Shown here in pieces: positions 22,854-59,701 of a DNA stretch of 64,000 nt; position 1 is the first letter of the stretch, and the number at the start of each line of letters is the position of its first letter. The notes beneath the pieces are model-generated. The model was not told where the DNA came from. It was given only the letters and a program-made list of their open reading frames with translations, and made no database searches. A program made the position numbers and the translations under genes. The stretch is from assembly GCA_965649825.1 (NCBI GenBank), contig OZ287711.1, positions 231,201 through 295,200 of the forward strand. Direction: 5' to 3'. The DNA is from Penicillus capitatus. Its lineage: Eukaryota; Plantae; Chlorophyta.

Positions 22854-23063
22854 ATCCTCAAATGGACTTTTCAGACTTCGCCGCGCTTCTCGACGGCGCA
22901 AGATCTCTTCAACGATACGACGGTTTCTCTTCCATACTGGATATGTACAAAACCTTGAATCCTCAAATGGACTTTTCAGACATCGCCGCGCTTCTCGGCG
23001 GCGGGAGATCTCTTCAACGATACGACGGTGTCCCTTCCATGCTGGATTTCTACAAAACCTTCA
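22854..23063 (+). repeat. 105-bp (35-codon) tandem duplication spanning the deletion junction of paralogue A
   Basis: ATCCTCAAATGGACTTTTCAGAC...TACAAAACCTT occurs at 22854 and 22959, with ATGs at 22862 and 22967. Confidence 0.92.
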
Positions 23064-23584
23064 CTTCCGCAGGAAAAGGACTAAATCTTTCAACCGAGCT
23101 ATTGACTGGCAAATACGAGAAGGTGTCATATCCTAAAGAAACCAAGACCGAATGTGTCGAAGAAAGCCATGTGGAGAAATTGACCGAAACAAGGATGGTT
23201 CAGGTTTGCGAAACGGTCGTCGACGATAAGGCAGCTAAGTTTAACACATACATGGGCCACACTGTGTCGGGTATTGGTAAAGCTGCGATGTGGATGGGTA
23301 ATGATCCACTCGTGGCAGGAACTCTTATGGCGGCTGGCTTTGTGCAAAAAAAGCTCGGAAAACTAGTGAGACCGAAAGAGACGATCAGATACGTCTACAG
23401 GCCAGTAGAAGTCACGGTGAACCTCGTCGTCACACAGAAGATCCGCAGAACGTATGAGCGAGAAATCCACGGAGTGTGGAAGATACTTGCTGGAGGCCAA
23501 AAGGTTTTCGAGGGGTATGAATACGGTCCATGGAAGAAAGCCGGCGAAGAGCTGCTGGATCGCACAGTAACGAAATCTGTATAA
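22862..23584 (+). CDS. Hairpin-GTPase family paralogue A: in-frame deletion of the whole G domain, stalk and tip module retained (240 aa)
   Basis: The C-terminal VTQKIRRTYEREIHGVWKILAGGQKVFEGYEYGPWK matches paralogues B, C and D. The N-terminal 14 codons join directly to the post-G-domain LDGG motif. Confidence 0.75.
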   Translation: MDFSDFAALLDGARSLQRYDGFSSILDMYKTLNPQMDFSDIAALLGGGRSLQRYDGVPSMLDFYKTFTSAGKGLNLSTELLTGKYEKVSYPKETKTECVEESHVEKLTETRMVQVCETVVDDKAAKFNTYMGHTVSGIGKAAMWMGNDPLVAGTLMAAGFVQKKLGKLVRPKETIRYVYRPVEVTVNLVVTQKIRRTYEREIHGVWKILAGGQKVFEGYEYGPWKKAGEELLDRTVTKSV

Positions 23585-24847
23585 GATCCGTCGAAAGGAT
23601 AGCGGCCAGAAGGCTCGATAAAAATATGCGGATTCAACATCTTCATTAACGCCCGCCATCAGCGTCAACATCTTCGATGTTTGATTTCGAACAGATCGAT
23701 TATCGATAAGCAACAAAAGCCTTTGCATTTTTGTCGTCTGAATAACAACGGCATTGTTACCCTGCTGATCCATTATTACCTGCATTCTCGTCAGGATTTG
23801 ATACTTGCACTTTGTTTGATCCCACTCGTTGTGAAAGAGCGTGTCTGTGTATCTATACTCAAATTGAACCGAATCTTCATCGGATGTACAAAACCTTCTG
23901 GGTCCTCATCTATCACTTGCATTGTGTTTGACCCTGCTCCTTGTGAAACAGCGTATCGGTGCATACCTATCTTCATCTGTTGCTTTCCAATCATGACAGT
24001 ATCTGTAAAAGAAGGCACTTAGATTTCAGTTGCCGTCGTGACATCGCATGCTTCTGCGTCCAGACCGCAGCTGAGAAACGCAGCGAAGAGAATGGAACTG
24101 ATGACGCTTCTGATACGTAAAAGAAGGCGAATATAACTTCTCCTTACCGTCATCCTCATTTTGCCGTCGCCGTCAGTCGACATCACGGTGTCATAACTCT
24201 CGTGGTCTGAGAGACTGTCGTCGAGAAGACGCATGTCTTCATAGAAGCGCTTACCGTATCGGACACGACAACTTCCCGAGGTCCCAGATCTGATAAGACA
24301 CGTTAGACTCGTCGACCAACCTAAAGTAAGACGTCACAGGTCACCCAAGATCTGTTTGTCACAGCATTTATGCACTTTGTGCTATTTCAGTTGATGCGGA
24401 CGTGGATGGTATGCCCACTGCTGTCACTAACTGTCACACTGTGCATATGGTTTCTTCTAGACCATCATAAACTGTTTACTCTATGCGAAACAGAGCTGCT
24501 TTTGCACAGATGAACACTTCGAAAGGAACAGTCCCTGTTTCGTCTGTCGGAAAATGATAACATGTCTTTATGTCACGACGAGATCGTAAATCAACATTAA
24601 GACACGGCCGTTTTTACCAATCAGGATTCATGGGGGATCCTTGTTCCCTCCGGCGACCAACACATTTGCTACGGTTATGCTGACACATTTGAGACAATTG
24701 TAATTGTTTGAAAGTTCGATTCTTCTGGCCAACTGCCGATCCTACTTCATTTTGAAGAGCGATAAGAGAACGGACATGTGTGATAGACAACGGAGTATTG
24801 AATACCCAAAGCTTGCGGGGAAAGTGAGCATTCGATAAGGCAGTAAT

Positions 24848-26628
24848 TCAATCAATCAGCCTGTGTACATATCGGAGACAAGGAAACGCTTTCACCATAG
24901 CGGAGTAAGTATCATGATCAACAGTGCCTTGCTTGAGAGAGCCCTCTATTCTTCTGAGCTTGGGCAGAGATCCGTCAGGCACTCCAGTTTCATCGTCAAC
25001 CAGCAGCTTCAAGGGAAACGGAACCTTGAGCACCTTCAAATTTGAGAGGAGGCTCAACTGTTTACAGAAAACTTTGTGGTCGATCTTTGGCTCACTAGCA
25101 TCAAGGCACAGCGCCGTGAGGCCGGTCAGAGCCTCAAAAGCGTCCAGAAACGGGCGATCCAGACAGCTATTGGACAATCTTAGCGTCTTCAACTGCCCGA
25201 GTTCTGTGAAGAACTGGAATGGCGTCACATTATTAAATAAATGCATCTCATCGGAACTGCAGATGTTTAGCGACGTGAGATTTGTCAAGTCCATCAGCGA
25301 CTCGGCCAAATCTTGTGGAAAAGCCTTCCAAGAACCAATTTTGAGATCGACGATTCCCTTTGGAAAGCGCGGAAATTGCTCTGGTAGAGATAGATCTCCC
25401 AGTAGATAAGGCAAAGACAGATTTGTCAGCTGCGTGAGAACTGTTAAACGTTTCGTGATCTCTGGCCAGAAATCCGGAGACTGACTTACACTGGAGAGAG
25501 TCAGGGATCTGAGTCCTGTCAGCGAGGGCATGATTTCGGCAAAAGCTTGCTTATTGCTTTCGGACATGCCGTCAACTTCCAGATGCGTCAGGTGATGCAT
25601 CTGCTGAAGTGCTTGGAAGAAGTTCGCATCTTGTTGGCGGAGGCTTCCAATTGTCAAGCTGGACAGATTCAAGAACGATCGCCATGGGGACGGCCCTGTC
25701 AAAGACGCCTGTTCGAAGTCTGTACAAACTGCCAGCAATTGCAGACGCGCAGCGTAAGGCGCGATACTCTATCGAAACACACACCGATTGCCAAACAAAC
25801 GAACAAAGGAGTTGGCAAACCTGCAGATTGCGGGGCAACGGCTGTGGGTAGCCAAAGTTGCCGCCGATAAAGAGGCCAGTAAGTCCTGTCAACATGGGAA
25901 AGATAAGCTCGCCCTGACTGTTGATCAGCAAGTTTGCAGGTATGCCCAGCTGTCTGAGTCCTGTAACACAGTCGTCGGTATCCAGATCGTTTTGGAGGAC
26001 ACCATTATGTGCGAGACTCAGCGATGTCAAGTTCGCCAGATGACGCAGCCCACGAATAAGGCATTGCAACGTGTCTTCCTGATCGGTCTGCACCTGAAGA
26101 AAGCGCAGACGGTGCATTGACAACATACAGGCGACCAGATTTCGTTGATCAATAGGTTCGCCCAGATTTCGTTGATCAATAGGTTCGACCAGATATAGTG
26201 TACCAATTTGTATACTGTTGAGACATAAAGAAAGATGGTTTAGATTCTCCAGTCGCTGCAAATGTGGGACGATGTGTGTTTCTATGACGTCCGTATCGTG
26301 AATCGATTCAATTATGATCAGCGTCTTGGCTTCCGGGAACATCTCTGCTGCTCTCTGCAGCTTATCCAAAGACATACTTTTTAGCTTGACAGGCAACTTT
26401 CCACATGCGTCGCGCCATCGGCGACAGACGAGACGGCATTCGTGAAGACCATCATCCTCCACGAGGTTCGCCAGCACTTTGAGCAGGAAGTGTTCCTGCT
26501 CGAGAAAGGCGCTGAGCTGATCGCCTACGTAAGGTCCACTGTTCTCAGCATCCGTCAACCCATCGGAACTGCGAGGCAACACACAACTGTAAGCTTTTAG
26601 CTATTTTCGCAAAGTTGACGTACGTCAT
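24848..26628 (-). CDS. F-box-like/LRR protein 1
   Basis: Motif LEQEHFLLKVL...GLHECRLVCRRWRDAC.KLPVKL followed by LxxLxxLxL repeats. Introns at 26623-26587 (37 nt) and 25820-25769 (52 nt) give a continuous frame. Confidence 0.82.
26135..26188 (-). repeat. 27-bp in-frame tandem duplication (EPIDQRNLG/EPIDQRNLV) in LRR1
   Basis: CCAGATTTCGTTGATCAATAGGTTCG occurs twice, 27 nt apart. Confidence 0.9.
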
Positions 26629-27995
26629 CTTGTAACGAACGGCGTTTGCCGACGAATGCAGAAACACGGCTTTCCGAGTTGAATAGCCTTTGTTTTATAG
26701 TCCTCGCTGACGTCGTCTAGCTTCATACGACATTCGTCAGATGTTCGCTTTCGATGTGACGCGACTCCTCGTGATGCCATGCGACATCTCATTCCAGACC
26801 AACGCTGCCTGCCGAGCACCAGTCCAAAATTCTCTTTGACCAGCCTCGACGCTCCACGAACTCCCTAAACTCGCCGTCCTTCTATGCCAGCATGAGCAAA
26901 TACAGTAGAGAGATATCGTCCGCGCCTGAACTTCAAACTTTGAGAAGAAAAGACAGCAGTCAGAGCAAAACATCAAACTGTTATGACGTACAACGAGCCG
27001 CTGATTAGACAGAGATGAACAGACAGTGTAGTAACGGATGGCATTTCATCGAAGCTTCTCATTTTTTCGAGTGTGCTTTGCTTCTGCGGTATCATTACCT
27101 TATGTCGTCCTTAACGGTGGGCATTGCAAACAGTTTCATCAAATCCGACTAAAGGATTAGCAGTCAGTCGTCTGCGAATTCTCCACAAAATTCTTCAGGA
27201 TGCGACGCATGGAGAGTTTGAAGATTACGTAAAGCAAGAGGCCAGTTGACGGTATCCTTTTTCTCATCGGGTGATAAATCGCACTGCAATGCCATGCTCC
27301 AGGCGCAAGTCCAGGACTGATTGTATCGTAGAGTCGAAGATCGAGCATTCACTGCGATCGCCTTGAAATCGACCGTCCCTCGAATGTAAGTCTGCTTTTA
27401 CATTGCAGCACCTGCTCTTCCACTGCCTCTTTGCCTGGCATCGTCTTCTCGTGAGCACTGTCCGCTCTTCAAGACCTTGTCAAAATGGAACACGAGACTC
27501 GAGGTATCGTCGTGGATTGCATAAATCGAGACAAATGAGCATCAGCGGAAGTGTCCACACCGCTATGGAGGTAACAGGTGTCACGAGCACTGCAGCCCGG
27601 CGGGTCTATGCACAAGTGGCTGAGAATGTGAAAGATGCGTTCTTTGTAAATGTCTCCTCGCTGTCACTGGTATGGTATGCGTCTATCCCACTGTGAGAAA
27701 CGACAGTCGCTGTGACTGTCATTCCTCTGTCATGGCGTGAGCTACGTGAGCGTGAAAGGAGTACGAACAAACGCATTGGTCTTTGATGGGACTGAGACAG
27801 ACGTGATCAGCAGATCACTAACGATCTCTCATAACAACCTCGTATCGTTCGTCTTTCTAAGAAGTCTTGTCAAACGAAACGACGAAAGGTTTTTAGACCG
27901 CCTTTTTCTTCCGTTTACGACTTTTTCGCTTCGTCTTTTTGCGTCCGTCTGGAACGCACTGTCCGTTTTTGTATTTGCCTCTGCGTTTGCGCTCA

Positions 27996-29108
27996 ATGTC
28001 TGTTCAGTCGGACTCTCCGAACCTCCCCGCGCTTCTGGTCGTTGGAAGGACGCGCGTGGGAAAAGGCCAATTTATTTCCACGGCTAACCAGATCCTCCAC
28101 GAATGCTCGCTTCCGGACATTGTTTCACATCGCAAAGTTTCGCACACCAGGACAACACGGGGATATCCTATGAGCCTTGATGGCCGCGACATCAGAATGG
28201 TGGACACTGTCGGCTTTGACGACAGTAGCGGAACGGACATTCCCGAAACAGCGTTGCTCCGTTTTTTGGAAAACACGGGAAAGGCTGACTTCTATCCACC
28301 ACTAGTGATACTTCAAACGCTGTCGGCACTCGAGAAGAATCTGTTGATGAAGATGGCAGCCGTCTTCCCAGAAGTCGTCGTGGCTTTTCGTGTAGGAGAC
28401 GAATCCGAAATCGAAGAGGCCCAGAATGACATTTATGCAGAGTGCCAAGTGACATCAATCAGGGTTTTCCCCATACAGACGTTCGTGCGTGACACCATTG
28501 ACGGAGGGCGCAGTCGGCAGTTGTATGACAGTAATGTCTCGGCTATACTGGATTTCTACAAGACCTTGACGCCTTCCAGGCAGATGCTGGATTTCTCAAA
28601 CCAGCTGTTTGCTGGACAGTATGAGAAGACGCCGTGTCCCAAAGAAACGAAAACTGAAGTTGTTGAGCTCAGCCACATAGAAACGCACCAAGAAACAAGG
28701 ACAGTTCCAGTTCCTAAAATCAAAGTCGTCAGCAATACATTGGATAGATACTATTACACCAACATCTTTGCGGTGTTCGCTGATGTCACACGTGAAGCCA
28801 AGGGAGAAATTACAGAGAGAATTCACCCAAGGGGGCCCCTTGCTGGTTTGTTTCACTTTTCGCGTGAGGTGTTTGGGAAATCCGAAGGCAATAGGCCGAC
28901 AAAGGAAGTGACTGTGTTTATCGACGAACAAAGAGACTTCGACGTTCCATTCACCATTACAGAGAAATTCCGCAGGACATCTCAGAGGGAAGTCGAAGAA
29001 GTGTGGAAGATACTCGCTGGAGAGATAAAGATTTATAAGGGATATGAATACGGGCCATGGGAGATCGTGAATGAAGACATTCTGCATCGCTCTGTTGACA
29101 GAGCCTGA
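27996..29108 (+). CDS. Hairpin-GTPase family paralogue B (370 aa, intact, intronless)
   Basis: LLVVGRTRVGKG (G1-like), VSHT (G2), MVDTVGFDDS (G3) and the conserved C-terminal KFRRTSQREVEEVWKILAG..GYEYGPW. Confidence 0.85.
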   Translation: MSVQSDSPNLPALLVVGRTRVGKGQFISTANQILHECSLPDIVSHRKVSHTRTTRGYPMSLDGRDIRMVDTVGFDDSSGTDIPETALLRFLENTGKADFYPPLVILQTLSALEKNLLMKMAAVFPEVVVAFRVGDESEIEEAQNDIYAECQVTSIRVFPIQTFVRDTIDGGRSRQLYDSNVSAILDFYKTLTPSRQMLDFSNQLFAGQYEKTPCPKETKTEVVELSHIETHQETRTVPVPKIKVVSNTLDRYYYTNIFAVFADVTREAKGEITERIHPRGPLAGLFHFSREVFGKSEGNRPTKEVTVFIDEQRDFDVPFTITEKFRRTSQREVEEVWKILAGEIKIYKGYEYGPWEIVNEDILHRSVDRA

Positions 29109-30898
29109 TCTGTCGTGTATTCGATGAGCATCTCTACTGACGATGAATGTTTGTGTTTGCCTTATCTTTCAGAATAACGCAAAGGTGAAAGCACTGCCGC
29201 TCTTGTGCTGCTTGTCCAAGAGAGCGTGTCCTGTTAGCGACGCGTGTTTTGCTGCCAAGAAGATGTCGATGGTCGTCTTAGATGTCTTCCCTAAGTGTAT
29301 GTACATAGCAAGAGGCGTGTGACTAAGGAGAGGAAGACTGTTTAGCTGTCTGCGGGATTCAGCGCAGCGAACCCTTTGCATTAGTCTGTTTCTTGTTTTC
29401 TGGATGTTAACACGGTTCAATCGCAGCAAATGTAAACGCTATTTGGGGATAAAGAAAAGAGTCAGAGCAGGCGCGTCGTTTACGAAAGAGAGATCCATTA
29501 GAGACACGCAATTACATGTACACAGACAGGCCTCAAGAAGTCGTTCAATCTCACTTAGAGTCAGTCGAGGATCCGAGGTGACGGCCATAACATTTGCCGT
29601 GTTGCGAAGCCATCCTGGACCGAGAAGCAAAAAGAGGAGAATGAGCGCGAGCCGCAAATACGTGTGACCTGGCAGAAAGGTAGAGATGAACATTTCGGAT
29701 GTCTTCTGAACAATACTTGTTGTTTGTCGTCTCAGACGTTTCGATCTCTGCATCCACTAGGTCTAGAAAGCGCGTGTCTTGCACAGCATTTATGAGCAAC
29801 CGAGTCGCACACACTTAATCATTTGGCCTTCCTTCGCCATCGTTGTCGTCCACGGTCTGCTGTGAATCCATCAAGAGGCCAAAGTGAGTTTACAGAAAGA
29901 GAAAGGCATCGACAAGGCGGAAAAAGACATCTTCCTGTGACGAGACATGTGAGGTAAACCGTTTCAGGCAGACGCTTGGTAACGCCGTAGCTTTCGTTTA
30001 GCGATGCTGGAGGAACTTTGGTCCTCTGTTGCGTCTCTTTCAGGAGTCTTTGGTCTCTCTACAACGTTAAAATCAACACTCGGCGAATCGTGGAGACGTG
30101 AAATGAAGCTTATCGGCTGCGAGACAAAGTCGACGGATGTCAACAGAAAAGAAGCATTGCTGTGGCAGTTTCATGGAAAAGCGTCTGTTTGGGGAGCAAT
30201 GACTTACATACGCGAACATGCTCAGCGCAGGACAGGTGTTACGAAAGATAGATAGATCCATCCGTTCTGTAACAGCTAGCCTTACAAACGCGTGTCGCTC
30301 TCGACTGGCATCAAGACGCTGCGAGATGATGGTAACTATATGAAATCAGATGAAATCTCTTGTAAAGGGTGTACACTGTCCTATGCATAGACGCGCTTAC
30401 CAAATTAGGCAAACTGTAGTTTCCCGATTCCTTACATCCGATGTCAATTTGTAACAAGTTTAAGCAATACGCAAACGTCCCAAGTTGAAAACCTCCTGTA
30501 CTTCTCTCAAAGAAAAGCCTTGCGGCGTTCTCATACAGTGTCCTTCCTTCCTCCCTTCCTCCGACTTGGTTTCGAGATCATGTTCTCGATAATAGCTGAG
30601 ATCTCGAAGAAGGTAGATGGGATTTCAGCTCGCCCTTCACAGTCGATCTCCGTCTAAAGAGATCCATCTGACTAAGATCTATGGTGAGTGATATTGTCTG
30701 GCGGAGTATATGCCAGACGAGCGTCGCGCGATCGAACAGGATCTGTTCAGCCGCGCGGCGCTCGTCTGGCGCATAGAACGCCCGACAAAAATTAGGCTAT
30801 CCCGTCGAGAACCGAGACCGGTCCTCGAGGGAAGCAAGTTGAAGAGAAGTGAAGAAAAATTTGAGAGGCGGTGGCCACCACCATGGAAGATAGGCCGT

Positions 30899-31013
30899 AG
30901 CCCGCCCGTCACCGTCCGCGTGTCTCTCCTCGCAGGCCGAAGCCCGCCCGTCACCGTCCGCGAGTCGTCCTCGCAGGCCGAAGCCCGCCCGTCACCGTCC
31001 GCGTGTCTCTCTG
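30899..31013. repeat. GC-rich direct repeat, 2.7 x 41-42 bp
   Basis: AGCCCGCCCGTCACCGTCCGCG occurs at 30899, 30941 and 30982. Confidence 0.9.
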
Positions 31014-33202
31014 CAAAAAAACATAGAAGAGAACACCTACTTTGTGAAGTGGCGATTCCGTGGCATCTTCCAGCTGTTGCGCTCACGAAGCTGGGTTGGG
31101 ACTCTGTTTTTACGGACTTCTCGAATGCCGCCTACGTGCAGAAGAAACTTGGCGTCAGTTCAGAGCCCTCTCTGTTCGGGGAACTTACCTTCAGAATTTG
31201 GCGCGAAGGCGCCCCTCGTCCGTTTTTCTCTCCGGCCACGTTTCCGTCTTCCGCTTCTGCGTGCGAAGCGACCTACAAAGCCAGGACAGCGCCGAATGAA
31301 CAGAAAGTGACAGAGACTTACCTTTCGGCGAGGTCGGCTGGCTGACTTCGTCTTCGGGGTCCAACACCTAAGAACGCGAAGAACTGCGCCGACGGAGACA
31401 TTGCGTCCGCGTCGCGTCGACAGAGTGTATGAACTTGCCTTACAAGTTCACCGTCGCGCGTTTTGCATCTGCGCCAGTCGGAGGCTTGAAACGAAATCAG
31501 TCGACAAAAAAGACGGGAATGACAACCGCGTTCCGCCTTTTATGGGTTGGAAGTTCACGATGTGACGTCGCCTGACGTCAGATCGAGTCGGAGGAAATGG
31601 AAAATGCCGTCGGACAGGAAGCGCCTCTGGATATGTTGTCGGTTCGAATTCTCTGAGAAACACAGACCCTACACCTCAGTGATGACCGTTCTGACGAATT
31701 CGCGCATCCAAGTCACATCGCGTTACGCGCACCGCATCTACGCATTCAGGCGGGACCCATTAGACTGCCTGTCACATCTTGAACCTTGTCATGGCCACAT
31801 CGACTGTGCAAAAAAGTCACGCTCTGTCCGATGCTGCCTACCAAAGGAGAATCTGCACACTTCGTGTGGAAGGTGAGATGTGTTCTGAGCAAAAAGACGT
31901 GGATACCTTCGGTTTTCGCCCTCCAGTTGACTGTGGCGTCAAACAGGGGAGTTCGCGTTGCAAGCGATGGATTACATCGATGCGCATGTCTGGATTACTT
32001 TTACTTTTCTGGATATTCGGCACACTCGGCTTAAGCTCGTTACCTGCCCGACGAACACTAGCATTCGCATGTTTGTCATTGAAAACGGGACTCTGTACAT
32101 CGTCTGTCTTCTCTGTTTATAACAATCCCATCTTCGGCACCGCCAACGTTGCAGACGAACAACGATATGACGGGAGAGTGAGTGAAATCTGCTCGAGCTG
32201 ACGTCGTTCGAGTTCGAGACTCGCCGCCAGTGCTCGTGCCTGTGTGTATATGCGCTATTCAAAACACACTGCAGATGGAGTCTACTCAGTAGCGAGGTGA
32301 GAGTGGATCAGGTCAGTCGGATGACCGATCTCTTTACGCCACATGTTGCTCATATAGCGAGGCCTGACAAGGGTATCGCATTCTACCGAGAGGGACTGGG
32401 ACTCTAACTGGGGGACTCGCGGCCATTATCGACTTCACTGCGAAGGATCTACAAAAAACACTAAGCAGACTTCTATGACGGAAGGCGCATCACGGCGAAC
32501 GGCCAATCCTTTATAATATCCGGCAGAAGATATAGTGCCCCGAATCTCTGTGCTTAAGGAATGCCTCAACGGTTACTGAAGGCAGCAGCTGCGAGAGGCC
32601 CGAATGGACGGACACATGTTTGCTCAGTACAAGGACGCCGAGGATGCGTAGCGTTTGGCGTTTCGTTCGATGAGCGCCGCCACTGGTTTCTGATAACGTT
32701 ATTTGTAAAGATGGACTCAAAGAAGTTTCCATTCCTACTGAGCACTCGCGTTTCGCGGCAGGACTGCGGCGTCCATGCCCAAACTGCCGTTCCTTTGGGC
32801 GTCTTGGCAGACGGATCTGTTACGCGATTGATTTATCGTCGCGTTCTCACCGATTGTTTTTCCGTACGCGGTGTGACTTTTCGCAATCTACGATGGTCTC
32901 CCTAAGAAGGTTTGTTGTTGTGTTCGAAACGATGTGCTAGATGCTCGTTCTGTATCGGAGAGCATGCACGCCACTAGCGCAGCCATAGGATAGCCAGAGA
33001 GAGTTAACAGTTCTCTGTGCGCTGTTCTTTGATTCGAAGCACTCTATCTAGATTAGACGTCTGATGGTTCGATCGACGCGATCAGTTTAATCTTCATTTG
33101 CCGTAAGCTGCATACCACCTCCACCAAAACGTTATACCCAAGGTCAGCTGCTTTTCCTTTCAAACAGAGCGAGAGCTCTCTTGTGCTGTGTAGATTTCAG
33201 GC

Positions 33203-46400: not shown

Positions 46401-49400
46401 GCTCCACCGTCTTTCGACTTTCCCTCAACGACAGTGGAGTCCTTTATGCTGATTGAGCTGCCATGTGATGCCGCGACAAAGCCGCCAGCCGTTTTCGAGG
46501 TGCTCGAAGACCAATGTGAACGTGCAATTTTAACGGTGGAGCTTCCGGCATAGACTAAAGCTCCAGATTCAGAGCTGCCGTTCGTAGCTGTCAAGTTTTT
46601 CAAAGTTATCGCCGATTGCTGAGCGTAGACGAATCCACCTTCATTTTCTGCGTTGTTGCCGGTAGCATATGTGTGCTTCAGCGTAGCATTTGACTGTTCC
46701 GCATAGATAAATCCTCCGTATTCAGCAGTGTTGCTTTTTGCATTGGTCTGATCCAGAGTCACAGTCGAGTGCTTTGCAAAAACGAAACCTCCGTTCTTTG
46801 CTCCATTGCCGTTTGCTTTTGTGGTGACAAGAGTCACAGTCGAATCTTTCGAGTGCATGAAGCCGCCATTAGACTCAGCGGTATTGTTGGACACTCTCGA
46901 CCTCTCCAGCGTTACTTTCGACTTCTCCGCATGCACGACTCCGCCATTAGACTCTGCGGTATTGTCGGTCACGGCAGAGTTCTCCAGCTGCACGTGCGAG
47001 TTGGACGCGTATACGACTCCACCATTAGACTCTGCGGTATTGTCGGTCACGGCAGAGTTCTCCAGCTGCACGCACGAGTGGGTCTCCGCGTACACGACTC
47101 CGCCATCAGACTCTGCACTGTTGAAAGTTGCGTTGGTGTTATCCAGCTTTACGGTCGAGTTGGACGCGTGCACGACTCCGCCATTAGACGTTGCGCTATT
47201 GTCAGTCACGGCAGAGTTCTCTAGGTTCACGTGCGAGTTGGTCTCCGCGCACACAACTCCGCCATTAGACTCCGCGCTGTTACCAGTTGCGGTGGTGGTG
47301 TTTAGAGTTACGTGCGAGTTGGACGCGTACACGACTCCACCATTAGCCCCGGCGTTGTTGTCGGTCACGGCAGAGTTCTCTAGCTGCATATGCGAGTTGA
47401 ACGCGTACACGACTCCGCCGTCATGCTCTGCGCTATTGTTGGTCGCGGCAGAGGTCTTCATTCTTACGCCCGAGTTGGACGCGTGCACGACTCCGCCAGC
47501 AAACCTTGCGATATTGTTGGTCGCGGCAGTGCTCTCCAGCTTTACGTGCGAGTTGGACGCGTACACGACTCCACCATTAGCCCCAGCGTTGTTGTCGGTC
47601 GCGGCAGAGTTCTCCAGGTTTACGTTCGAGTGGGTCTCCGCGTACACGACTCCGCCATCAGACTCTGCGCTATTGTTGGTAACGGTGGTGCTCTCCAGGT
47701 TTACGGTCGAATAATGCACTACTACCACTCCTCCACGTGATGCTCTATTGTTGGTCGCGGCAGAGTTCACCAGCGTTACGTCCGATAACCACGCGTACAC
47801 GGCTCCACCATCATGCTCTGCGCTATTGTTGGTAACGGCGGTGCTCTCCAGCTTTGCGTTCGATCTATTCATATCTAGAACTCCTCCCTGTGATGCTCTA
47901 TTGTTAATCGCGGTGGTGTTCTTCAGCTCTACAGTCGACCAAGCTGCGTACACGACAGCTTGGTTATCGGACGCGACGGTGTTCTCCAACTTCACGTACG
48001 AGCCACCCCCCGCGTACACGACTCCGCCTCTCAATGCGATATTACCAGTCACGGTGGTATCCTTCAGCTCTACGTTCGATTCTTCCGCGTATACGAGACC
48101 TCCATAAGACATTGCTCTGTTGTCGGACGCAGCGGTGTTCTCCAGCTTCACGTTCGATTCTCTTCTTGCGTATACGACACCTCCTTCAGACATTGCGGTG
48201 TTGTCCGTCGCGGCAGAGTTCTTCAGCTCTACGGTCGAGTTGTCCACGTAGACACAACCACCCTTCCAAAAGGCGACATTGTTCCGGAAGAGCGAACCGT
48301 ACAGAAAGACATGCGTTGTGTCTTCGGCGTAGATAGCCGACCCTGAGGTCGCTGAATTCGAAGAGAAATTGCATGTGCTGATATCAGCAAGTGACTTGAC
48401 CAGATGAATACAAGAGCTGAATCGGCTGTCGCGCATGTTTTGCGCCAGAGTATTCCGATTGAAAGACCCGTTCGCCAGGGAAAGGACACCGTCTCGAACT
48501 CGAATGATGGTGAGGTTGTTTTCTGAGGCAACGAATCCCTGGATTGTGATTGTGGTGTTGGATGACCCTTGAGCGTATAGCAATGACGATAATTGATCGT
48601 TGGATTCATCTACGATGTTCCTGGCCACGGTACAGTTCTCCACACTAGTTCTCTTCGCTAGGAACACTCCGCACCCATCGCTTGAGCAAAAGTTGTCCGC
48701 AATCTCGACATTGGCCATCTCCAGTCCAGAACATGACGATGACATACGAAGTCCCGAGGCCGCAATGAGTCTGTTCTTGCGTATCGTGACGCGGCGGAGA
48801 GCTACGAGTCCAGAGTTGCCAGGAGTCTCACATCCAGTGACTTCGACGAGCGACCGGACTCCCTCCGCTTCTTCGAATGTGCACCCCTCAATGACGAGAT
48901 CGACAAAGGTAGCGCTCGTCGCTCTACGCAAGGAAAGGAAGATGGATATCCCAATCGATACCGTCTTACTGCACTAGGAAGAGGCCGGAGTTCTTCCGAG
49001 GGCATGTAAACGTTGTCTTCGCTGCTGGATTCTCGGACGCGTCGCCGTCGAAGTCTGTGCCGTCGATGAGGGAGGAGATGGTCAGTTGCCAAGGAATGAC
49101 CACACGCGATCGTGGCTGAATGACCCTTGTCACGTTGAACGCAATCACATCACCCTCCTCGGTGCAGTTGACAATTCTTTGCAAATCGTTGCCAATTTCT
49201 TCAAGGACAGCGTCGCTGACGATCCATGTTCGACCATCTGACGAAGTGTACCGTGCTCTGGCCTCGCCTGTCAAATCACAATTGAGACCTACGACATGGC
49301 AGAAACCCTTAAACTCCCGAGCACCGTGCGACGGAGGAAGAATGACTGACCTGCCTCGTTTCCCAGGCCGGACGTAGCAGACTGGAGTGGAAGAAGCGGC

Positions 49401-51522: not shown

Positions 51523-52476
51523 CTACTGAAACGGAACGCGCGCCTCGTCCACCAGCGCTTGAATCTCTTCGACAGACTGCAGATCGCGTTGCTCTTCGAG
51601 CTTCCAGTTCATATCCATCGCGCCAAAAGGTAAGCTTGTCTGATACCACGCGTGATTCTGAATGTCTTCAATTGAAAAGCGATCCTCAGGATTCAACACT
51701 AGGATCTTCTGAATCAAATCGCTACAGTCGTCCGACATCGATCCACGCGGTATCTCGTAGTCGAGCCTTCTCAGACGATCCAGAATGATCGCGTTGTGCA
51801 GTCTTGGATTCTCTCCCTGTCTTACGAATGGAAACCGCCTCACGAGCATCACGTAGAGAAACACACCGCAGCTCCAGATGTCTGCTTTCTTGCCATCGTA
51901 TGGATCGCCACGGTTTTCTCTCAGAATCACTTCCGGTGCCAGGTACGGTCGCGTTCCGACAACGGTCGTCGGGACGGAGTCCTTGTCGACGTGCTTCGAG
52001 AATCCAAAGTCGCAGATCTTGAGCAAAGGCCAGGCATTGTCATTCAGCAACGTGTTTTCGAGTTTGATGTCGCGATTGGCGACGCCCATTCGGTGGCAGT
52101 AATCCAGTCCGATGATCAGCTGCTGGAAGAACCAGCGGACCATATCCTCCGAGAGACCACGGCGCTGGCGGATGTACTCCACCAGGTCGCCACCTTCTGC
52201 GTACTCCATGACGATCGCTAGGTAGCGCGCCGTCAGGAAGACGCCCTTGAACTGGATGACATGATGGTGCAGGAGGTTCTTGTGATTGAGAATCTCCCGT
52301 TCGACGTTCGTGTTAATGCACGGACCACGTGGCAGGAATTTGATGGCGACCCGTTCGCCGACGCGCACGTCTTGAGCGAGGATGACGAATCCGAACGAGC
52401 CTCGGTTGAGGTCGCTTATCTTGCGATAGCGCGGATGGTCGACGAGCAGATCTTCCTCGGCAGCTTCGTCCGACAT
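51523..52476 (-). CDS. SnRK2-family Ser/Thr kinase (intronless)
   Basis: RGSFGFV, VAIKF, REILNH, LAIVMEYA.GG, RWFFQQLI.GLDYCH, NRDIKLEN, LKICDFGFSK, VGT.PYLAPE and YDGKKADIWSCGV. Confidence 0.92.
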   Translation of the reverse strand: MSDEAAEEDLLVDHPRYRKISDLNRGSFGFVILAQDVRVGERVAIKFLPRGPCINTNVEREILNHKNLLHHHVIQFKGVFLTARYLAIVMEYAEGGDLVEYIRQRRGLSEDMVRWFFQQLIIGLDYCHRMGVANRDIKLENTLLNDNAWPLLKICDFGFSKHVDKDSVPTTVVGTRPYLAPEVILRENRGDPYDGKKADIWSCGVFLYVMLVRRFPFVRQGENPRLHNAIILDRLRRLDYEIPRGSMSDDCSDLIQKILVLNPEDRFSIEDIQNHAWYQTSLPFGAMDMNWKLEEQRDLQSVEEIQALVDEARVPFQ

Positions 52477-52631
52477 GGAGAGGGCTTTGTCGGCGTTGCA
52501 GAACACGAATCGCCTAACACGGTGCGCTGTTTATCGCTAATCGACGCATGATGGTTCACAGGAAATGTCGAGCATGTCTTTTCAAACGGTGTTTCGCACT
52601 CTACTGTGTATCAAACATGTTCTGCACAACT

Positions 52632-54297
52632 TTAGGGGCGGGGGAACGTTGGCTCAATCACATCTGCAGACGTTAACTCCTTAATGCGCCGGAGACTCGG
52701 GAAGGTCTTCATCAGTGCCGCCTCTTGAGCAGGAAACAGACAAGTCTCCGGACGAAACCACAGTTCTCTGAGATTTTTCATGCTTCCCTGTAGCTTTCTT
52801 CGATCCAACTCGAATGGCATGGAGGACCACAACTTGAGTTCTCTGACATTCGAAAGTGCTGTCAAGCCAAAGTAGAACCCAGGCAACTCGAAAGGTAATT
52901 TCCATGCCTCGAAATGCAGCTTCGTCAGATCCGGCAAGGTTCCCACAGCATCGAAGAAATCGTACTCCACGTCAACCATTATCACCGTCAGCGTCTTCAG
53001 CTTCCTCAATTGCGCAAGCGTGGATGAACGCAGTGCAGGTGAGTGCGTGTCAGATGATCTTAATTCTGGGTCAGTGTTGACGATTTTGAGTGATTCCAGG
53101 TTTGGCATGCTGGCCAAGAAGTAGGGGAAATCTGGGGGCAGGTCGTAATCGGGTTGGATGTGGAGATCGACCAGCGACGTCAAGCAACGCAGAGATCTCC
53201 CAGAGATGTTGCGCCCCGACAGAACAAGACGCGTCAACTGCGTCATGGCGGTCAGCGATTCCGTCATCTTCAGCGGAAACGGTGACTCCGACGTCTCTCT
53301 GAGAACGAGCGCCTGGAGATGGACCAGCGAGAACACCGATTCCATAAAGGCATCGACGCTTTCGCACTTGACGCCTGCCGCGAAGAACTCCGTCAGATGA
53401 TGCATATCGCTCAGAACGGCGGCGAAATTGCTGTGCTTTTCGTCGACGTCGACAACGGCCAGTTTTTCCAGGCGAGAGAAGGAACGCAGGATGGACCAGT
53501 CTTTGAGTTGGGGATGCTGTCCGAACACGCCGAGATGCAGAGATCGTAGAGAAGAGGCATAGGGTGCCATCACCTGCAACACACATCGACGCCATCGGGT
53601 CGTTGCCTTTTAGCCGTACCTGCAGTTTAGGAATGGGGTATTGCAAGTGCGGCAGTCGCCATCTGCTCGTGATCTCGAGGCGTGTCAGTTGAGTGAGAGA
53701 CGGGAAGCGCAACTCTTCACCGTGGCCGAAGAGAATGTTGGTATTTCCTATCAGCGTTTGCAGCCTTTGCAGTTCGGTGACGGGCATCGGATCGACATAC
53801 ACTGCCCTGCAAGACGTATAGATGGCCAGTGCCGTCAGGTTTTGCAGCTCCCTCAAGACATCCGTCATGGCATAGAAGGTTTCCTGAGCGTCGATTTTGA
53901 CGGAGAGCGACTGCAGACGTTCCACCGATCGAAGACTCGATACCAGGCTTTCCGGAATGTTGTAGGTTTGGTAGAACGCCAGTTTAAGGTGTTGGAGATG
54001 TCGAAGTTGGGGGAGGTAGGGGATCAGATGCGTCTCCAGGATGTCTGGTGTCGTGGCGTCATTTTGAAGGGGCAGAGAGGTGACGGCAGGGAATGCCTCG
54101 GTGATGCGTTGCATCTCGTTCATGTGCATTTGTTTAAGCTTGACAGGCAGTTTCCGAGAGGCTTCGTACCAACGACGACAGACCAGACGGCATTCGCGAA
54201 TGTCTTCGTCCAAAACGCACGTGAGGATCTTCAGCAGGAAGTACTCTTCTTCGAGCAGTGTGCTCAGGAGGCGGCCCTCGGGCAATGTAGACTCCAT
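52632..54297 (-). CDS. F-box-like/LRR protein 2 (539 aa)
   Basis: LLEEEYFLLKIL...IRECRLVCRRWYEAS.KLPVKL; an intron at 53619-53574 (46 nt) sits at the same position as in LRR1 and LRR3. Confidence 0.85.
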
Positions 54298-54684: not shown

Positions 54685-55478
54685 ATGAAGGCCATTCGAC
54701 CCGGTGTCCACTCCATCCAGCCTTCAGCCAGAGCGTCGCCGCTTGTTCGTCGGAGACGTCTGCGTCTCGTTGCCGCGTCGACGACACCGTAGAAGAAGAA
54801 CGCGCGACTGGTGTTGGAAGATGGCACCGTCTGGCCTGGCGTCGGATTCGGCGCCAAAGGCACACACGTGGCCGAAGTGGTGTTCAATACGTCGATGACC
54901 GGATATCAAGAGATCATGACGGATCCGAGCTACAAAGGACAGTTCGTGTGCTTCACGCATCCACACATCGGCAACGTCGGCGTCAACACAGGTCACTCCT
55001 TCAAATTGTGGGTCAGTCAGTGTATGCACGGGTCATGTATTGGCAGATGACGTCGAGTCAAGAGCCTGCCACCTGCGTGGGATCGTTGTTCAGGATCTCT
55101 CTCACGCATTGTCTCGAACTACCGTGCCGAGACGTCGCTGACGCAGTACTGTGAGGAGAACGATGTGGTGGGCATAGCGGAACTCGGCACGCGTGCCTTG
55201 ACGAAACGCATCCGGGAAAGAGGCGCGCTCGTCGGTGAGCACATCCCGTGATGTGACGGCTGCCAAATGGGATCACCCGACCGATCGACCCTCACACACG
55301 CCTTTACACGTCTGGCATACTTTCTCACTTGGATGGGCGCGTTTTAAAGACGTGCGTTACCTTTTTAGGTGGTGACTTTCGACATTGGTATTAAGTGCAA
55401 TATCTTGCGTCGTTTGGCATCGCCAGGGCCACACGCTTCCGATCAGGCTTTTGCCGAAGCTGACGAACCGAAGGCGGT
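54685..55478 (+). pseudogene. carA: carA pseudogene
   Basis: Collinear with 20869-22384. It has an in-frame TAG at 54790 (TGG in the original), a 2-nt insertion near 55100, an approximately 210-bp deletion near 55245 and an approximately 477-bp deletion at 55416-55423. Confidence 0.95.
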
Positions 55479-55704
55479 AAAAGCCAAGGTGTAAAAACGC
55501 CAGCATCTCGTGTTATACATAGCTCACTTCTGCGAGAGATCGACAGGAGCTGAGGCACAGAAAGGCATCCCTTTAAACAACGGATAAGAACTGCGCACGG
55601 ACATGCCCGTAGCGCATTGATTGAATCTCTACCCCCACTTAAATACAGAAGCAATATCGTTGGGCTTGCATGAAGGCACCGACACATCCTGGATAGGAAG
55701 ATGC

Positions 55705-57511
55705 CTATGGATCCGTTGTCAACTTGCATTCCCCATCGAAGAGCTCGATAGCTGAGGTCGTCAGATGGATGTGCTTGTGTGGATATGCACGGAAAGGAAA
55801 GCGCACGAGACAGATGTGTCGAAGGCACGGAAAGGCACGGATCAGAGCCGAATGGCTGACGGTTTCCTCCAATGATGTCGCAATCTGTCGATACCACTTC
55901 TTGCGGTCGAATTCCGTCGTCACGAAGAGCATCTTCTGCAGCCTCGGCAAGCATCCTCCCATCAATCGTATTCGATCTTCCGTCAGTGCCCAGCGACACG
56001 ATACGGTCAGCACTGCTAAACGGGACAACAGCGTCAGCTGAGCGAAGAAAACATGATCGCCTTCGTCAAGGAGGCCCGGAAGAAAACTCAACTCCGTCAA
56101 ACCTGGCAGCGCCGCCAGCGCAGTGAAAAAACTGGACGCTATCGGATCGACCTTCCACAACTGCAATGTCTTGAGTTTGGTCAACGGCCGAACAACTTCC
56201 GGCGGCAATGCGAAGGGTTCGCCGCACTTATTGATCTTGAGCGATGTCAGATGCGGCATACAGGACAGTGCTTGCGGCAAGAATGTCGGCATGGGGCTGT
56301 GGCCGACGATTTCGAGTTCGATTAACTTCGTCAGGCACGAGAAGGAGCTTCCACATAACGATCGTTCCACGACGAGGCGCGTCAACTGCGTCATCGCCGT
56401 GAACGCTTCGGTCGAGTCACATGCGACCCGCAGATGTCGATTCTGAGCGGGCTCGAGGAGGAGTGAGCGGAGTTGCGTGAAGCTCGGCACGAAACTCACC
56501 GGTACAGGAGCATAATCATTCGTCATACAGGAGATTTCCAGTTCCGTCAAGTGATGCATCTCCTGGACAGCGGCATAGAAACCCTCGAGTGGCACTTCCT
56601 TGTATACAAGTTTAAGCGACTCCAGACTCGAAAACCGTGTCAGCGATGGTATGTCTGCGATCAAAGCGCTGTCCCAGAAGTCATGAATCTCTAGCGACTT
56701 CAGCAGCGCGGCATAAGGCAAGAGAGTCTGCACAGCATAACATCCTTCGAGAAGTGACATGTATTGTCATCACTTTCAGCTGCAGAGCTCTCTCTGCCCT
56801 ATAAGGCAATCTAACGCAGTAAACACGGAGCTGTGTGAGCCGAGTCAACGTCGGCAAGAGCAGGCGATGGTCCGGAGTGAGCAATACATGAGCATCAGCG
56901 ACGAGCTTCACAAGTCCTTGCAACTGTGTGACGGGCTCGAAGGGATCGAGTCGTTTTCGAGGCGCACGGAGACCTAGGGACGTGAGCTGCGTCAGGTATG
57001 GCAAGAGCTCGATCCACGCAGGGTAGTCGCTTTTCTCTTTGATGCGGAAGGAAAGGGATCGAAGGCTCGTCATCGAGAGGAGTATGGGTTGGAGTTTCTC
57101 CGCGACTGGACGTCCTCCGCATAATCGTGTCTCTAAAGTGTGCAGTTTTGTGAATCGTGCCAGCCACGGAATCGCATCGGCATCCAAGGCATCGTACCTG
57201 TCCCGCCAGTCTTGGAAACAGAGAGCCGTGGCGTCTGGAAACGCCGTGGCTGCTTTTTTGACCACTTTGCGGGCGTCGAAAGCGAGTCCTGTTCGAATCC
57301 TGACGGGTAGCTTCTGGCAAGCTTCGCGCCATTGGCGACAGACGAGGCGGCACTCTTGGAGACCGTCTGCCATGGCGCAGGTCAGCACTTTGAGCAGGAA
57401 ATACTCGTGTTCGAGAAGAGCGCCGAGAATGCTCGCTGCTGTCGGCGCGGGCCCAGACTCGGACGCGGCATCAGCGAGGTGTCGCTGGTTCGCTGGAGAC
57501 GACGATGACAT
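55705..57511 (-). CDS. F-box-like/LRR protein 3 (586 aa)
   Basis: LLEHEYFLLKVL...GLQECRLVCRQWREACQKLPV; an intron at 56773-56728 (46 nt) joins ORFs 56681 and 55705 in frame. Confidence 0.85.
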
Positions 57512-58417
57512 TGTTCCTCACTTATGGCGAATAAACGTTTACGATTGTCGCGACGAAGAGACAGTAGGAATTCCGAGACCTGCTGCAAACGCATCGACGT
57601 CGATGCACGATTCCGAATCACAACGTCGCCGAAATCGACGTTTGTATCATGTGCGCATCTAGCGGCGACGGTAGATAAGCGGTCTCCCCTCGACTAGCTT
57701 GCAAAACCTCAAATCCCAGAGAGACGTCCGCGTCGCCTCGCCGAGTCGCGCGAGGAAACGCATGGCGGAAAACCAGACGAACGCTATAGAATCGACAACG
57801 GGTTTACTGCGGGTGGCGGCGGAGTTACTGCGATGATGTGACCCAGAACACCATGGCAGTGAGCGACTCCGCCGCCACCCGCGACAAACCTGTTGTCTGA
57901 CCTCTCGCGAAGTCGATCTCGCAAAATTGCCCGAGGTCCCAGACGCTTAAAACAAAACATGTTCGACCAGCCGACCGACCTGGAAGCAAGCCGGCACTTG
58001 TCACCAAGACCTGTCACATCTCTCTGTTCGTCCGTGCGATGTTGAGCTTCTGCTGCCGGCGCAGACACCGACCACTCCTCCTGAGTCGGATAACGAATAC
58101 ACCCGAGTAAGGCAGTCAGTGTGCCGTTTCGAAGGGAACAGTACGGACGGCGCTGTCTTGTGGAGAGGCGACGGGATTCTCTCGTTGCGCAAACGCACCG
58201 GTTCAGATGAAATGGTTGACACGTGTCAAGGTTTCAGAACCGTCTTTGCGGTTTTCTCCAAAACTTCGTCTTTTCCACACGTACAAAGTCGCGTTAAACA
58301 GAGTGCCGAACTGTTCTTCGTCAGCCCTTGTTCGGTATTTCCGACTTTCCCGTTTCGTTTTTTGCGTGGTTGGGTACACACCGTCGTTATTCGTTGCCAC
58401 CTTCGCGTCTGCGTCCA

Positions 58418-59701
58418 ATGAATTCTCAAGCGAACTCTTCAGACCGCGCCGTGCTTCTTACCGTTGGGAGGACGCGCGTTGGGAAGGGCGAATTCATTTC
58501 CACAGCCAACCGCCTCCTCCACGGCCGCGGACTTCCACACATTGTTTCGCGTCGCAAAGTCTCGCACACCAAGAAGACACATGGATATCCCATGCGCCTT
58601 GCCGACGAAGACATCCGAATGGTCGACACCGTCGGCTTCGACGACAGCAGCGGAACGGACATCCCCGAGACAACGCTGCTCCGTTTTCTCGCGGACACGG
58701 GGAAAGCCGACTTCTATCCGCCGCTCGTCATACTGCAGACGCTGTCTGCGCTGGAGAAGGACGTGCTGAAGAAGACGAGCGCCGTTTTCTCGGAAGTCGT
58801 CGTAGCCCTTCGAGTGGAAGACGCATCCGAGATCGAAGAGGCCCAGAATGACATCGCTAACGAGTGCCGAGTGACACCGATCAGAGTCTTCCCCATACAG
58901 ACGTTCGTGCGCGACGCCCTCGACGGCGGGCGCAGTCGGCAGCTGTATGACAGTGACGTCTCGGCCATCCTGGATTTCTACAGAACCTTGACGGCTTCGA
59001 GAAAGAAGCTGGACTTCTCGAGTGAACTCTTTAAAGGAGAATTCGAAAGAAGGCCGTCGCGCCCAGAGACGAAAAGCGAAGTCGTCAAGGTGCGCAGCAA
59101 CGAAAAACGCCTTGAGAGAAAGACGATCGAAGTCCCCAAGAAGAAGACGCTTGTCAACGGTGGGCATTTCGAAAGAACAGCTGATTGCACCAAAGTCAAA
59201 CGTCTGACTGCGGGGGCTGACGTGTGTCACGCGGGAGCAGCGGGGTGCGGCGTCGGCGGCGCAGCATTGAGTGCGACTATTGCCGCCATGCCTGAGGTCG
59301 CTGCGATGTCAGCTATGGTACCTCCAGTCGCCATCGCCCTGCTTGGAGCATCGGCTGGGCTGTTCATCGCTGGAGCCTGCTTGAAAGACGAAGCCGATTT
59401 TTGCGAACAGGGGCGAAAGTGGGTCGTAGATAAAAAGGAGGAGATCGTGTACGTGACCAAGAACGAAGTGGTCAACGTGAAGTACATCATCACACAGAAG
59501 TTTCGCAGGACGTCGGAGAGAGAGGTTCACGAAGTCTGGAAAGTGCTTGCTGGCGAGATCGAGATCTTCGTGGAGTATGCGTACGGTCCGTGGAAGGTGC
59601 TCAGCGATGAGCTGCTGGATCACTTCGAAACGGAAATGCCCGCATACCTGCCGGAAGACAAGTTGCCAAAGGGTCTGTCCAAAGGAGAACGTGTCCATTG
59701 A
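58418..59701 (+). CDS. Hairpin-GTPase family paralogue D (427 aa, intact, intronless)
   Basis: GRTRVGKG, VSHT and DTVGFDDS, a Gly/Ala-rich hydrophobic tip, and the conserved C-terminal KFRRTSEREVHEVWKVLAG..EYAYGPW. Confidence 0.87.
   Translation: MNSQANSSDRAVLLTVGRTRVGKGEFISTANRLLHGRGLPHIVSRRKVSHTKKTHGYPMRLADEDIRMVDTVGFDDSSGTDIPETTLLRFLADTGKADFYPPLVILQTLSALEKDVLKKTSAVFSEVVVALRVEDASEIEEAQNDIANECRVTPIRVFPIQTFVRDALDGGRSRQLYDSDVSAILDFYRTLTASRKKLDFSSELFKGEFERRPSRPETKSEVVKVRSNEKRLERKTIEVPKKKTLVNGGHFERTADCTKVKRLTAGADVCHAGAAGCGVGGAALSATIAAMPEVAAMSAMVPPVAIALLGASAGLFIAGACLKDEADFCEQGRKWVVDKKEEIVYVTKNEVVNVKYIITQKFRRTSEREVHEVWKVLAGEIEIFVEYAYGPWKVLSDELLDHFETEMPAYLPEDKLPKGLSKGERVH

Follow-up and report, generated by a model that had tools for sequence, protein, structure and literature searches.

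A probable birth-and-death cluster built on a unit of F-box-like LRR, GTPase-like and NLR-like genes in the green alga Penicillus capitatus

Introduction

Contig OZ287711.1 of the Penicillus capitatus (Chlorophyta) assembly GCA_965649825.1 carries, between positions 231,201 and 295,200 of the forward strand, several members of two gene families, one predicted to encode GTPase-like proteins and the other proteins with an F-box-like N-terminus followed by leucine-rich repeats (LRR). This stretch of 64,000 nucleotides is referred to as the window, and positions are those of the window unless a related locus is named. Two of the GTPase-like genes stand head to head with an F-box-LRR gene, and the question raised by the locus is what has brought and kept the two families together. 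A sequence-only reading of the window took the pairs for a toxin-antidote or guard-executor module, in which a cytotoxic membrane-acting GTPase is restrained by its F-box-LRR partner through ubiquitylation and copies without a partner are selected to be disarmed.

Comparison with further copies of both families shows that the integrity of a GTPase-like gene is independent of the presence or state of an adjacent LRR gene. The adjacency itself is real, recurrent and non-random, and is found because a unit of three genes, the third of them encoding an NLR-like protein, has been copied as a block. The region as a whole is probably a tandemly amplified, haplotype-variable birth-and-death cluster of the innate-immunity type, composed of such units.

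Results

Loci and samples compared

For the genes studied, close relatives were found exclusively in two ENA metagenome assemblies, ERZ25074695 and ERZ26696514. Twelve context loci (L001 to L012), which include allelic and related contigs, were mapped for homologs of the GTPase, LRR, NACHT, kinase and PMP genes. They add nine gene contexts to those of the window, and 13 distinct GTPase loci, window copies included, were tabulated for an LRR neighbour and for the integrity of the open reading frame (ORF). Individual database copies are given by their P numbers. One contig, ctg340102, is allelic or near-allelic to the window, with 98.5% identity across positions 48427-60251. In the second sample Sec6 is 91% identical, and the same three gene families occur together there too. 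JGI metagenome contigs were scanned twice for relatives; the first scan returned none and the second a single 1.4-kb contig without context.

A repeating unit of three genes

Four copies of the GTPase-like family were detected in the window by tblastn with the protein of copy D, namely A (22994-23578), B (27996-29108), C (39406-40212 and 41007-41219) and D (58418-59701). The genes and intervals that make up the arrangement are as follows.

22862..23584, forward strand: GTPase-family copy A, an open ORF of 240 aa in which the G domain is absent; tblastn match to D residues 168-401 only.
24848..26628, reverse strand: F-box-LRR gene LRR1, 557 aa when spliced; introns at 26569-26623 (55 nt) and 25769-25820 (52 nt).
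26629..27995: divergent intergenic region between LRR1 and B, 1367 bp, with distinct conserved upstream blocks for each gene.
27996..29108, forward strand: GTPase-family copy B, intact and uninterrupted, 370 aa; hairpin-less subtype.
29109..33202: spacer between the GTPase-like and NACHT genes, about 4.1 kb, with a 41-42-bp tandem repeat at 30892-31011.
33203..38135, forward strand: NLR-like gene encoding, in this order, an N-terminal region of 550 aa, a NACHT domain and HEAT repeats; third member of the unit.
39406..41231, forward strand: GTPase-family copy C, a pseudogene in this haplotype with a 619-bp insertion and a 1-bp insertion downstream, by comparison with the intact L003 allele.
52632..54297, reverse strand: F-box-LRR gene LRR2, 539 aa when spliced; intron at 53574-53619; no GTPase partner.
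55705..57511, reverse strand: F-box-LRR gene LRR3, 586 aa when spliced; intron at 56728-56773; head to head with D.
58418..59701, forward strand: GTPase-family copy D, uninterrupted, 427 aa; predicted from AlphaFold2, Foldseek and hydropathy to combine a GIMAP-like P-loop domain with a long β-stalk and, at about residues 283-324, a hydrophobic hairpin rich in Gly and Ala.

The start codons and distances given in the sequence-only reading were confirmed, with LRR1 (ATG at 26628, reverse) and B (ATG at 27996, forward) separated by 1367 bp, and LRR3 (ATG at 57511, reverse) and D (ATG at 58418, forward) by 906 bp. The same arrangement was found again elsewhere. An LRR gene or its remnant lies 0.9-1.6 kb upstream of the GTPase-like gene, on the opposite strand, at 8 of the 13 loci (B, D, the 361-aa gene of L001, P0013, P0012, P0005, P0015 and P0016), and the paired loci are divergent, with the GTPase-like proteins 42-60% identical to each other and the LRR proteins 30-60%. 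Outside the main cluster the most divergent members still have an LRR gene within 6 kb (P0017) or a head-to-head LRR remnant (P0016). Both D-type GTPases, D and P0002, are near LRR3-like genes.

The description as a two-gene module holds for this recurrent LRR-GTPase adjacency but leaves out a third gene. In six units (those of B, L001, P0013, P0002, P0012 and P0010) a NACHT-HEAT gene follows 3′ of the GTPase-like gene on the same strand, about 4.1 kb on. In the window the NACHT domain scores 54.5 bits in Pfam against a cut-off of 26.7, and HEAT and HEAT_2 repeats are present; a paralogue is a single ORF of 1645 aa. The N-terminal 550 aa (33203-34855) have no match in Pfam or the PDB and are 100% identical between the two haplotypes, whereas the NACHT-HEAT part differs. 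This N-terminal region may be an effector domain of a new type.

The spacer that precedes the NLR-like gene is 72-92% identical to its counterparts in L001, L002, L004, L005, L006 and L007, and a related repeat with a period of about 34 bp is expanded upstream of P0007 (L004, 8026-8562). Scans of 29109-33202 for Rfam families, tRNAs and a convincing ORF were negative. A spliced gene that escapes recognition, or an extended regulatory region, may lie in this conserved interval. The repeating unit can thus be written as an LRR gene and a divergent GTPase-like gene followed by the NLR-like gene; it is about 13 kb long and was copied as a block. As far as the searched literature shows, this unit is undescribed, and no pairing of F-box and GIMAP genes in algae was found there.

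Integrity of the GTPase-like genes and the presence of an LRR partner

In the window alone, integrity does track the partner, as the sequence-only reading had proposed. The two partnered copies, B and D, are uninterrupted, the protein of D differing from database copy P0001 in one residue, and the two copies without a partner are altered. Both alterations read differently once the alleles are included. Copy A was described as crippled and does lack the G domain, but its ORF is open and is kept in a nearly identical allele, P0028, and the family promoter is present upstream with a degenerate G-box and a TATA box, so that "crippled" is an interpretation. The ORF includes a tandem duplication of about 35 aa, start codon included, and its hydrophobic segment is weak (maximum Kyte-Doolittle hydropathy over 19 residues, KD19, of 0.97).

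Copy C is broken as reported in the window haplotype but intact in others. The insertion at 40259-40877 (619 bp) lies within the hairpin-coding part, is bordered on both sides by the 6-bp direct repeat GCCGCT, starts with GT and ends with AG. Such ends would suit a spliceable intron, a reading that was considered; if the insert is simply spliced out, the frame stays shifted up to the 1-bp insertion downstream. No other copies of the insert were found in the window or in the 12 related loci, and it could be introner-like or a one-off insertion. Intact forms of 398 aa are P0004, from the allelic contig (L003), and P0003, from the second sample (L006); both lie directly 3′ of a NACHT gene and have no head-to-head LRR gene. 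The ratio of non-synonymous to synonymous substitution (dN/dS) between alleles of C is 0.28. The disruption of C is a recent polymorphism.

Over the 13 loci the correlation vanishes. Four of the five loci without a head-to-head LRR gene are intact in at least one haplotype (P0004/P0003, P0007, P0002 and P0017), which speaks against the claim that partnerless copies have been disarmed by selection. The sequence-only reading had named many intact copies without an LRR neighbour as evidence that would speak against it, and as far as intactness is concerned such copies were found. Two of the four, P0002 and P0017, have a co-directional LRR gene within a few kb; P0002 stands in a single-strand array of LRR, kinase and GTPase-like genes in that order, and the sole LRR gene of P0017 is 5.7 kb away. 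For P0007, an intact gene of 431 aa with a long hairpin, there is no LRR gene in the 10 kb upstream. Two intact genes stand beside dead partners. The LRR gene head to head with P0005 is interrupted by a frameshift and an in-frame stop, and that of P0016 is reduced to the first ~90 codons, an F-box remnant. Copy B has a live partner in LRR1 and yet lacks the hairpin on which the proposed membrane toxicity depends.

When sequence identity among the GTPase-like proteins of nine pairs was compared with that among their LRR partners in a Mantel test, the result was r = 0.31 and p = 0.14, so there is no strict co-phylogeny, and LRR1-like genes are paired with at least four GTPase subtypes.

Upstream regions

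The conserved sequence of the intergenic regions belongs to each gene separately. About 250 nt are alignable upstream of every GTPase paralogue and contain a G-box (ACACGTGTC), which is followed after about 55 nt by a TATAAAG-like box, and a conserved 5′ untranslated region (5′UTR). In the window these blocks are at 22600-22861, 27740-27995, 39150-39405 and 58160-58417, with equivalents in L001-L008. The best defined is that of D, from an alignment of 12 paralogue upstream regions.

58218..58417, forward strand: promoter and 5′UTR of D, with the G-box GACACGTGTC at 58218-58227 and a TATA-like box and initiator at about 58280-58301.

Even copies whose proteins share only about 45% identity have this promoter in common, an unusual degree of conservation for old paralogues.

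In motif scans the G-box and TATA-like motifs were confined to the GTPase upstream regions. LRR1-like genes have a separate upstream block of their own and share a 5′ intron, and alignments of the GTPase side and the LRR1-like side revealed no shared motif. A single bidirectional promoter for each pair was considered and rejected, since the upstream blocks are distinct and the GTPase motifs are found on the GTPase side only. As part of the unit, the intergenic region is passed on entire.

The GTPase-like family

The family is narrow, with 17 matches in a word-indexed search and 42 matches at E ≤0.001 among 1.84 billion representatives, the weakest profile matches in the latter being genuine AIG1, septin and MMR_HSR1 proteins. 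Pfam scores are below threshold, at 16.7 bits for B against the AIG1 cut-off of 27, no AIG1 match for D, and 16.6-19.2 bits for MMR_HSR1 against a cut-off of 21.9. A profile search of PDB sequences with the family returned no GTPase match. The P-loop reads G[RK]TRxGKG in B, C, D, most paralogues and the distant relatives P0020-P0027 and P0047, and does not conform to GxxxxGK[ST]; it places a Gly at the position where the Mg2+-coordinating Ser or Thr is expected. A GKS P-loop is found only in P0015 and P0017. Other elements are those of a GTPase, with VDTVGFD invariant at G3 and a conserved switch-I SHT upstream of it. The β-strand equivalent to G4 reads PPLVILQTLSALE and has no Asp at the expected place, as judged at the level of the sequence alignment. 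Nucleotide binding is uncertain because nearly all members have GKG and no G4 Asp is apparent.

The AlphaFold2 model of the G domain has a predicted local distance difference test score (pLDDT) of mostly 80-95, and its best Foldseek matches are GIMAP7 (8.7e-6), GIMAP2, Toc34 and GIMAP5 (E 1e-5 to 3e-4, probability 1.0). On this model the G domain is assigned to the GIMAP/Toc34-type fold. In the C-terminal half, three very long and highly charged β-strands of about 25-45 residues each are predicted with pLDDT >90 in this β-stalk, and in most members a helical hairpin at the tip is formed by 40-58 residues that are rich in Gly and Ala, carry no charge and include prolines at the centre. A fold search with the C-terminal β-stalk and hairpin against the PDB and BFVD gave no significant match. 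Pore-forming proteins top that Foldseek list, none of them significant (E ≥0.9, probability ≤0.06), and are not used as evidence here.

The earlier label of hairpin GTPase suits D but not B, where hydropathy reveals no hydrophobic hairpin and the most hydrophobic 19-residue window is in the G domain. The hairpin-less form of B is conserved in P0009, P0010 and P0011. As far as the searched literature shows, an architecture of GKG P-loop, β-stalk and hairpin is undescribed.

The F-box-LRR genes

The ORF of each of LRR1, LRR2 and LRR3 is split over two frames by a homologous phase-0 GT..AG intron of 46-52 nt, and is stop-free once spliced. That the three might be frameshifted pseudogenes was rejected on account of this common intron, which has the same position in all of them. 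LRR2 was correctly reported as an intact orphan, and encodes 539 aa after removal of the 46-nt intron; the other orphan LRR genes are in L009 and L010. LRR1-like genes have an extra intron right after the ATG plus 2 nt, kept in at least seven paralogues, and members of this subfamily adjoin GTPase-like genes again in L001, L005, L007, L012 and L008.

LRR1 matches the Pfam F-box (PF00646) with 21.0 bits against a cut-off of 20.5 and also matches LRR_14, and the F-box matches of LRR2 and LRR3 are below the cut-offs (E 2e-4 to 9e-3). The N-terminal sequence ECRLVCRRW...LPV is invariant in the family, with the canonical Leu-Pro replaced by Leu-Leu. From these similarities "F-box-like" is a reasonable label for the N-terminus. 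The C-terminal part forms an LRR solenoid for which plant-like models are best (LRR_14 with up to 57 bits, RPS2-like and FBD-associated F-box LRR), and LRR structures were matched in a profile search at E 5e-12. Look-ups of the clusters of LRR relatives returned no protein names.

Haplotype variation and neighbouring genes

Three further features lie within or beside the units.

46136..48931, reverse strand: gene for a PMP-repeat protein, 931 aa, Pfam Chlam_PMP; 74% amino-acid identity to its allele.
51523..52506, reverse strand: protein kinase gene, Pfam Pkinase 1e-60, downstream of LRR2.
60252..64000, reverse strand: long terminal repeat (LTR)-type retroelement with protease, reverse transcriptase and integrase (Pfam), downstream of D, in this haplotype only.

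The two haplotypes differ in the insertion in C, in the retroelement after D and in large differences of the PMP gene. The allelic contig L001 is without the retroelement and runs on into a further LRR-GTPase-NACHT unit. Positions 13005-21284 of L001 correspond to window 23983-33292, with flanks 75-91% identical to those of the LRR1-B-NACHT unit, and the GTPase-like gene that they enclose belongs to another subtype, one with the hairpin. The mosaic points to exchange between units, probably as cassettes or by gene conversion.

Between alleles, dN/dS is 0.10 for the kinase, 0.48 for NACHT, 0.35-0.55 for LRR3 and ~1 for the alignable part of PMP; exon 2 of LRR2 has a value of 2.2, from 12 changes only. 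The pattern fits relaxed or diversifying evolution of recognition-type genes. The PMP-repeat protein may be a fast-evolving surface or secreted protein. The order of LRR gene then kinase gene is found again in L002.

About 650 bp of the gene for the small subunit of carbamoyl-phosphate synthase (20778-21456) are duplicated at ~54605-55255, in the interval between LRR2 and LRR3, with 87% identity. The piece is a footprint of segmental rearrangement within the cluster.

The window is eukaryotic DNA. Its GC content is ~53%, introns are few and very short, and the LTR retroelement occupies the right end. Positions 1-22 kb carry housekeeping genes for Sec6, a DENN protein, triosephosphate isomerase and the carbamoyl-phosphate synthase small subunit. 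Among solved structures, those nearest to the triosephosphate isomerase are chloroplast and plant enzymes, and the nearest named relative of Sec6 is that of Caulerpa lentillifera (54% identity; EukProt EP00210), so that a green alga related to Ulvophyceae is the most likely source. Neither Rfam families nor tRNAs were detected in the window. Local GC skew (+0.31) and AT skew are strong at 2001-4431, where an ORF of 526 aa (2851-4431) has no Pfam match.

Discussion

The cluster and its evolution

A birth-and-death cluster of innate-immunity type is the description that probably fits the region. Its content is of the immune type, with NACHT and HEAT domains, LRR_14 and RPS2-like LRRs, a kinase and a PMP-repeat protein. 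The unit has been copied as a block, each gene carrying its own conserved upstream sequence. The turnover of copies by birth and death that followed is seen in the truncation of A, the insertion and frameshift in C, the decay of LRR genes, the exchange of GTPase subtypes and the insertion of the retroelement.

Several points weigh against this description. The word "immune" is inferred from domain content, clustering and polymorphism only, and retention of the head-to-head order through deep divergence could mean selection for linkage, hence functional coupling, and not passive co-duplication. The F-box call is marginal, as only LRR1 is above the Pfam cut-off and Leu-Leu stands for Leu-Pro. 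The GTPase-like protein may not bind or hydrolyse GTP, given its GKG P-loop and the lack of a visible G4. The 13 loci are non-independent, several being alleles or orthologs across the two metagenome assemblies, and the allelic dN/dS values rest on few substitutions.

Roles can be proposed for the products. The hairpin would anchor the GTPase-like protein in an internal membrane or on the surface of lipid droplets, in the manner of the membrane-anchored GIMAPs, and the rigid, charged β-stalk would keep the P-loop domain off the membrane. GIMAP2 and GIMAP5 are anchored through C-terminal hydrophobic segments. The GTPase-like protein might then share a pathway with the NLR-like protein and serve there as scaffold or effector, and the NACHT-HEAT protein would be the switch. 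The F-box-LRR protein might act as an SCF-type adaptor or sensor that sets the level of a component of the cluster, either the GTPase or the NLR. A precedent for such F-box control exists in plants, where the F-box protein CPR1 controls the stability of the NLR immune receptors SNC1 and RPS2.

Other explanations of the adjacency

Functional coupling between LRR and GTPase-like proteins is possible, judging from the arrangement of their genes. Its most specific form, a functional and non-selfish module of two genes in which each F-box-LRR protein is the dedicated SCF adaptor or sensor of the neighbouring GTPase and selection keeps matching alleles linked, is nevertheless unlikely. A spacing of 0.9-1.6 kb kept at eight loci despite the divergence of both partners would be expected of such a module, as would the association of D-type GTPases with LRR3-like genes, and the example of CPR1 lends it plausibility. 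Set against this, intact GTPase-like genes are found without a partner (P0004/P0003 and P0007) or beside pseudogenised LRR genes (P0005 and P0016), LRR genes occur as orphans (LRR2, L009 and L010), and the promoters are separate and have no motif in common. LRR1-like genes are not faithful to one GTPase subtype, the Mantel test is non-significant, and the NACHT protein is an equally possible target of the LRR protein.

It is improbable, at the other extreme, that the genes are functionally unrelated neighbours with a history of segmental duplication in common and no joint pathway. Block duplication alone accounts for the adjacency, and both the possession of its own promoter by each gene and the absence of significant co-phylogeny agree with this. 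However, the three families have stayed together although protein identity between units has fallen to 30-60%, they are found together again in the second sample, and the most divergent members, P0017 and P0016, still retain an LRR gene nearby or a head-to-head remnant.

The proposal of a cytotoxic GTPase with an F-box-LRR antidote is not supported, the claim of a drive element included, and is very improbable, for although the linkage that it calls for is present at 8 of the 13 loci and long β-hairpins with a hydrophobic tip at the C-terminus recall its premise, the likeness to pore formers there is non-significant, partnerless copies are mostly intact, C is a recent polymorphism with intact alleles, the partnered B is hairpin-less, and more than 13 clustered copies together with an NLR gene are unlike known single-locus toxin-antidote drivers.

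Comparison with known systems

The GTPase-like proteins resemble GIMAP/IAN (AIG1) proteins and Toc34 in the predicted fold of the G domain, the weak Pfam AIG1 and MMR_HSR1 matches, the C-terminal hydrophobic segments suited to anchoring and their occurrence in tandem, lineage-specific clusters. Head-to-head tandem duplicates have been described among Arabidopsis IAN genes (PMC12845241). They differ from GIMAP/IAN proteins in scoring below the Pfam AIG1 threshold, in having mostly GKG in place of GK[ST] and no recognisable G4, in the long three-stranded β-stalk with its helical hairpin, for which the PDB and BFVD hold no significant match, and in being a very narrow family.

The F-box-LRR genes share with adaptors such as CPR1 and FBXL an N-terminal F-box-like motif followed by a long LRR solenoid, best matched by plant-type LRR models. 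Unlike those adaptors, they have a marginal F-box signal without Leu-Pro and are paired with GTPase-like and NLR-like genes.

With toxin-antidote elements of the Caenorhabditis elegans peel-1/zeel-1 type the locus has in common two tightly linked genes, a hydrophobic membrane segment together with an E3-adaptor-like region, and presence/absence and knockout polymorphism between haplotypes. It differs in being a multi-copy tandem family with an NLR gene and in the independence of the proposed toxin's integrity from the proposed antidote, and there is no sequence relationship or significant structural relationship between the two systems.

Head-to-head plant NLR pairs such as RRS1/RPS4, and NLR clusters generally, are similar in their divergent orientation and short intergenic region, in having a STAND NTPase (here NACHT) in the unit, and in tandem birth and death, structural variation between haplotypes and polymorphism of LRRs. 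The divergent partners here, however, are an F-box-LRR and a GIMAP-like protein and not two NLRs, and the NLR-like gene is co-directional, lies downstream and has HEAT repeats in place of LRRs.

Implications

The gene families and the type of cluster are of kinds already known, and as it stands this is a fairly ordinary birth-and-death cluster. More distinctive is the GTPase-like family, in which a predicted GIMAP-like fold and a GKG P-loop go together with a hydrophobic hairpin and a β-stalk that is very long and made of a single sheet. Neither solved nor viral structures gave a significant match to this architecture.

If the cluster is functional, three families with members in the immunity of plants and animals would be joined in one duplicating unit, namely GIMAP/IAN-like GTPases, F-box-LRR adaptors and NACHT STAND NTPases, and the locus would give a first look at the organisation of intracellular defence or self/non-self genes in poorly sampled green algae. 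A more elaborate proposal, to which only a small probability is given, is that the three components of the unit make up a module for immunity or non-self recognition in siphonous-type green algae, with a GIMAP-like membrane executor of a new, hairpin-bearing, β-stalked and possibly catalytically dead (GKG) class, a polymorphic F-box-LRR protein as its dedicated sensor or turnover adaptor, and an NLR-like switch. Were this true, algae would have in this module their analogue of paired immune receptors, assembled from different parts.

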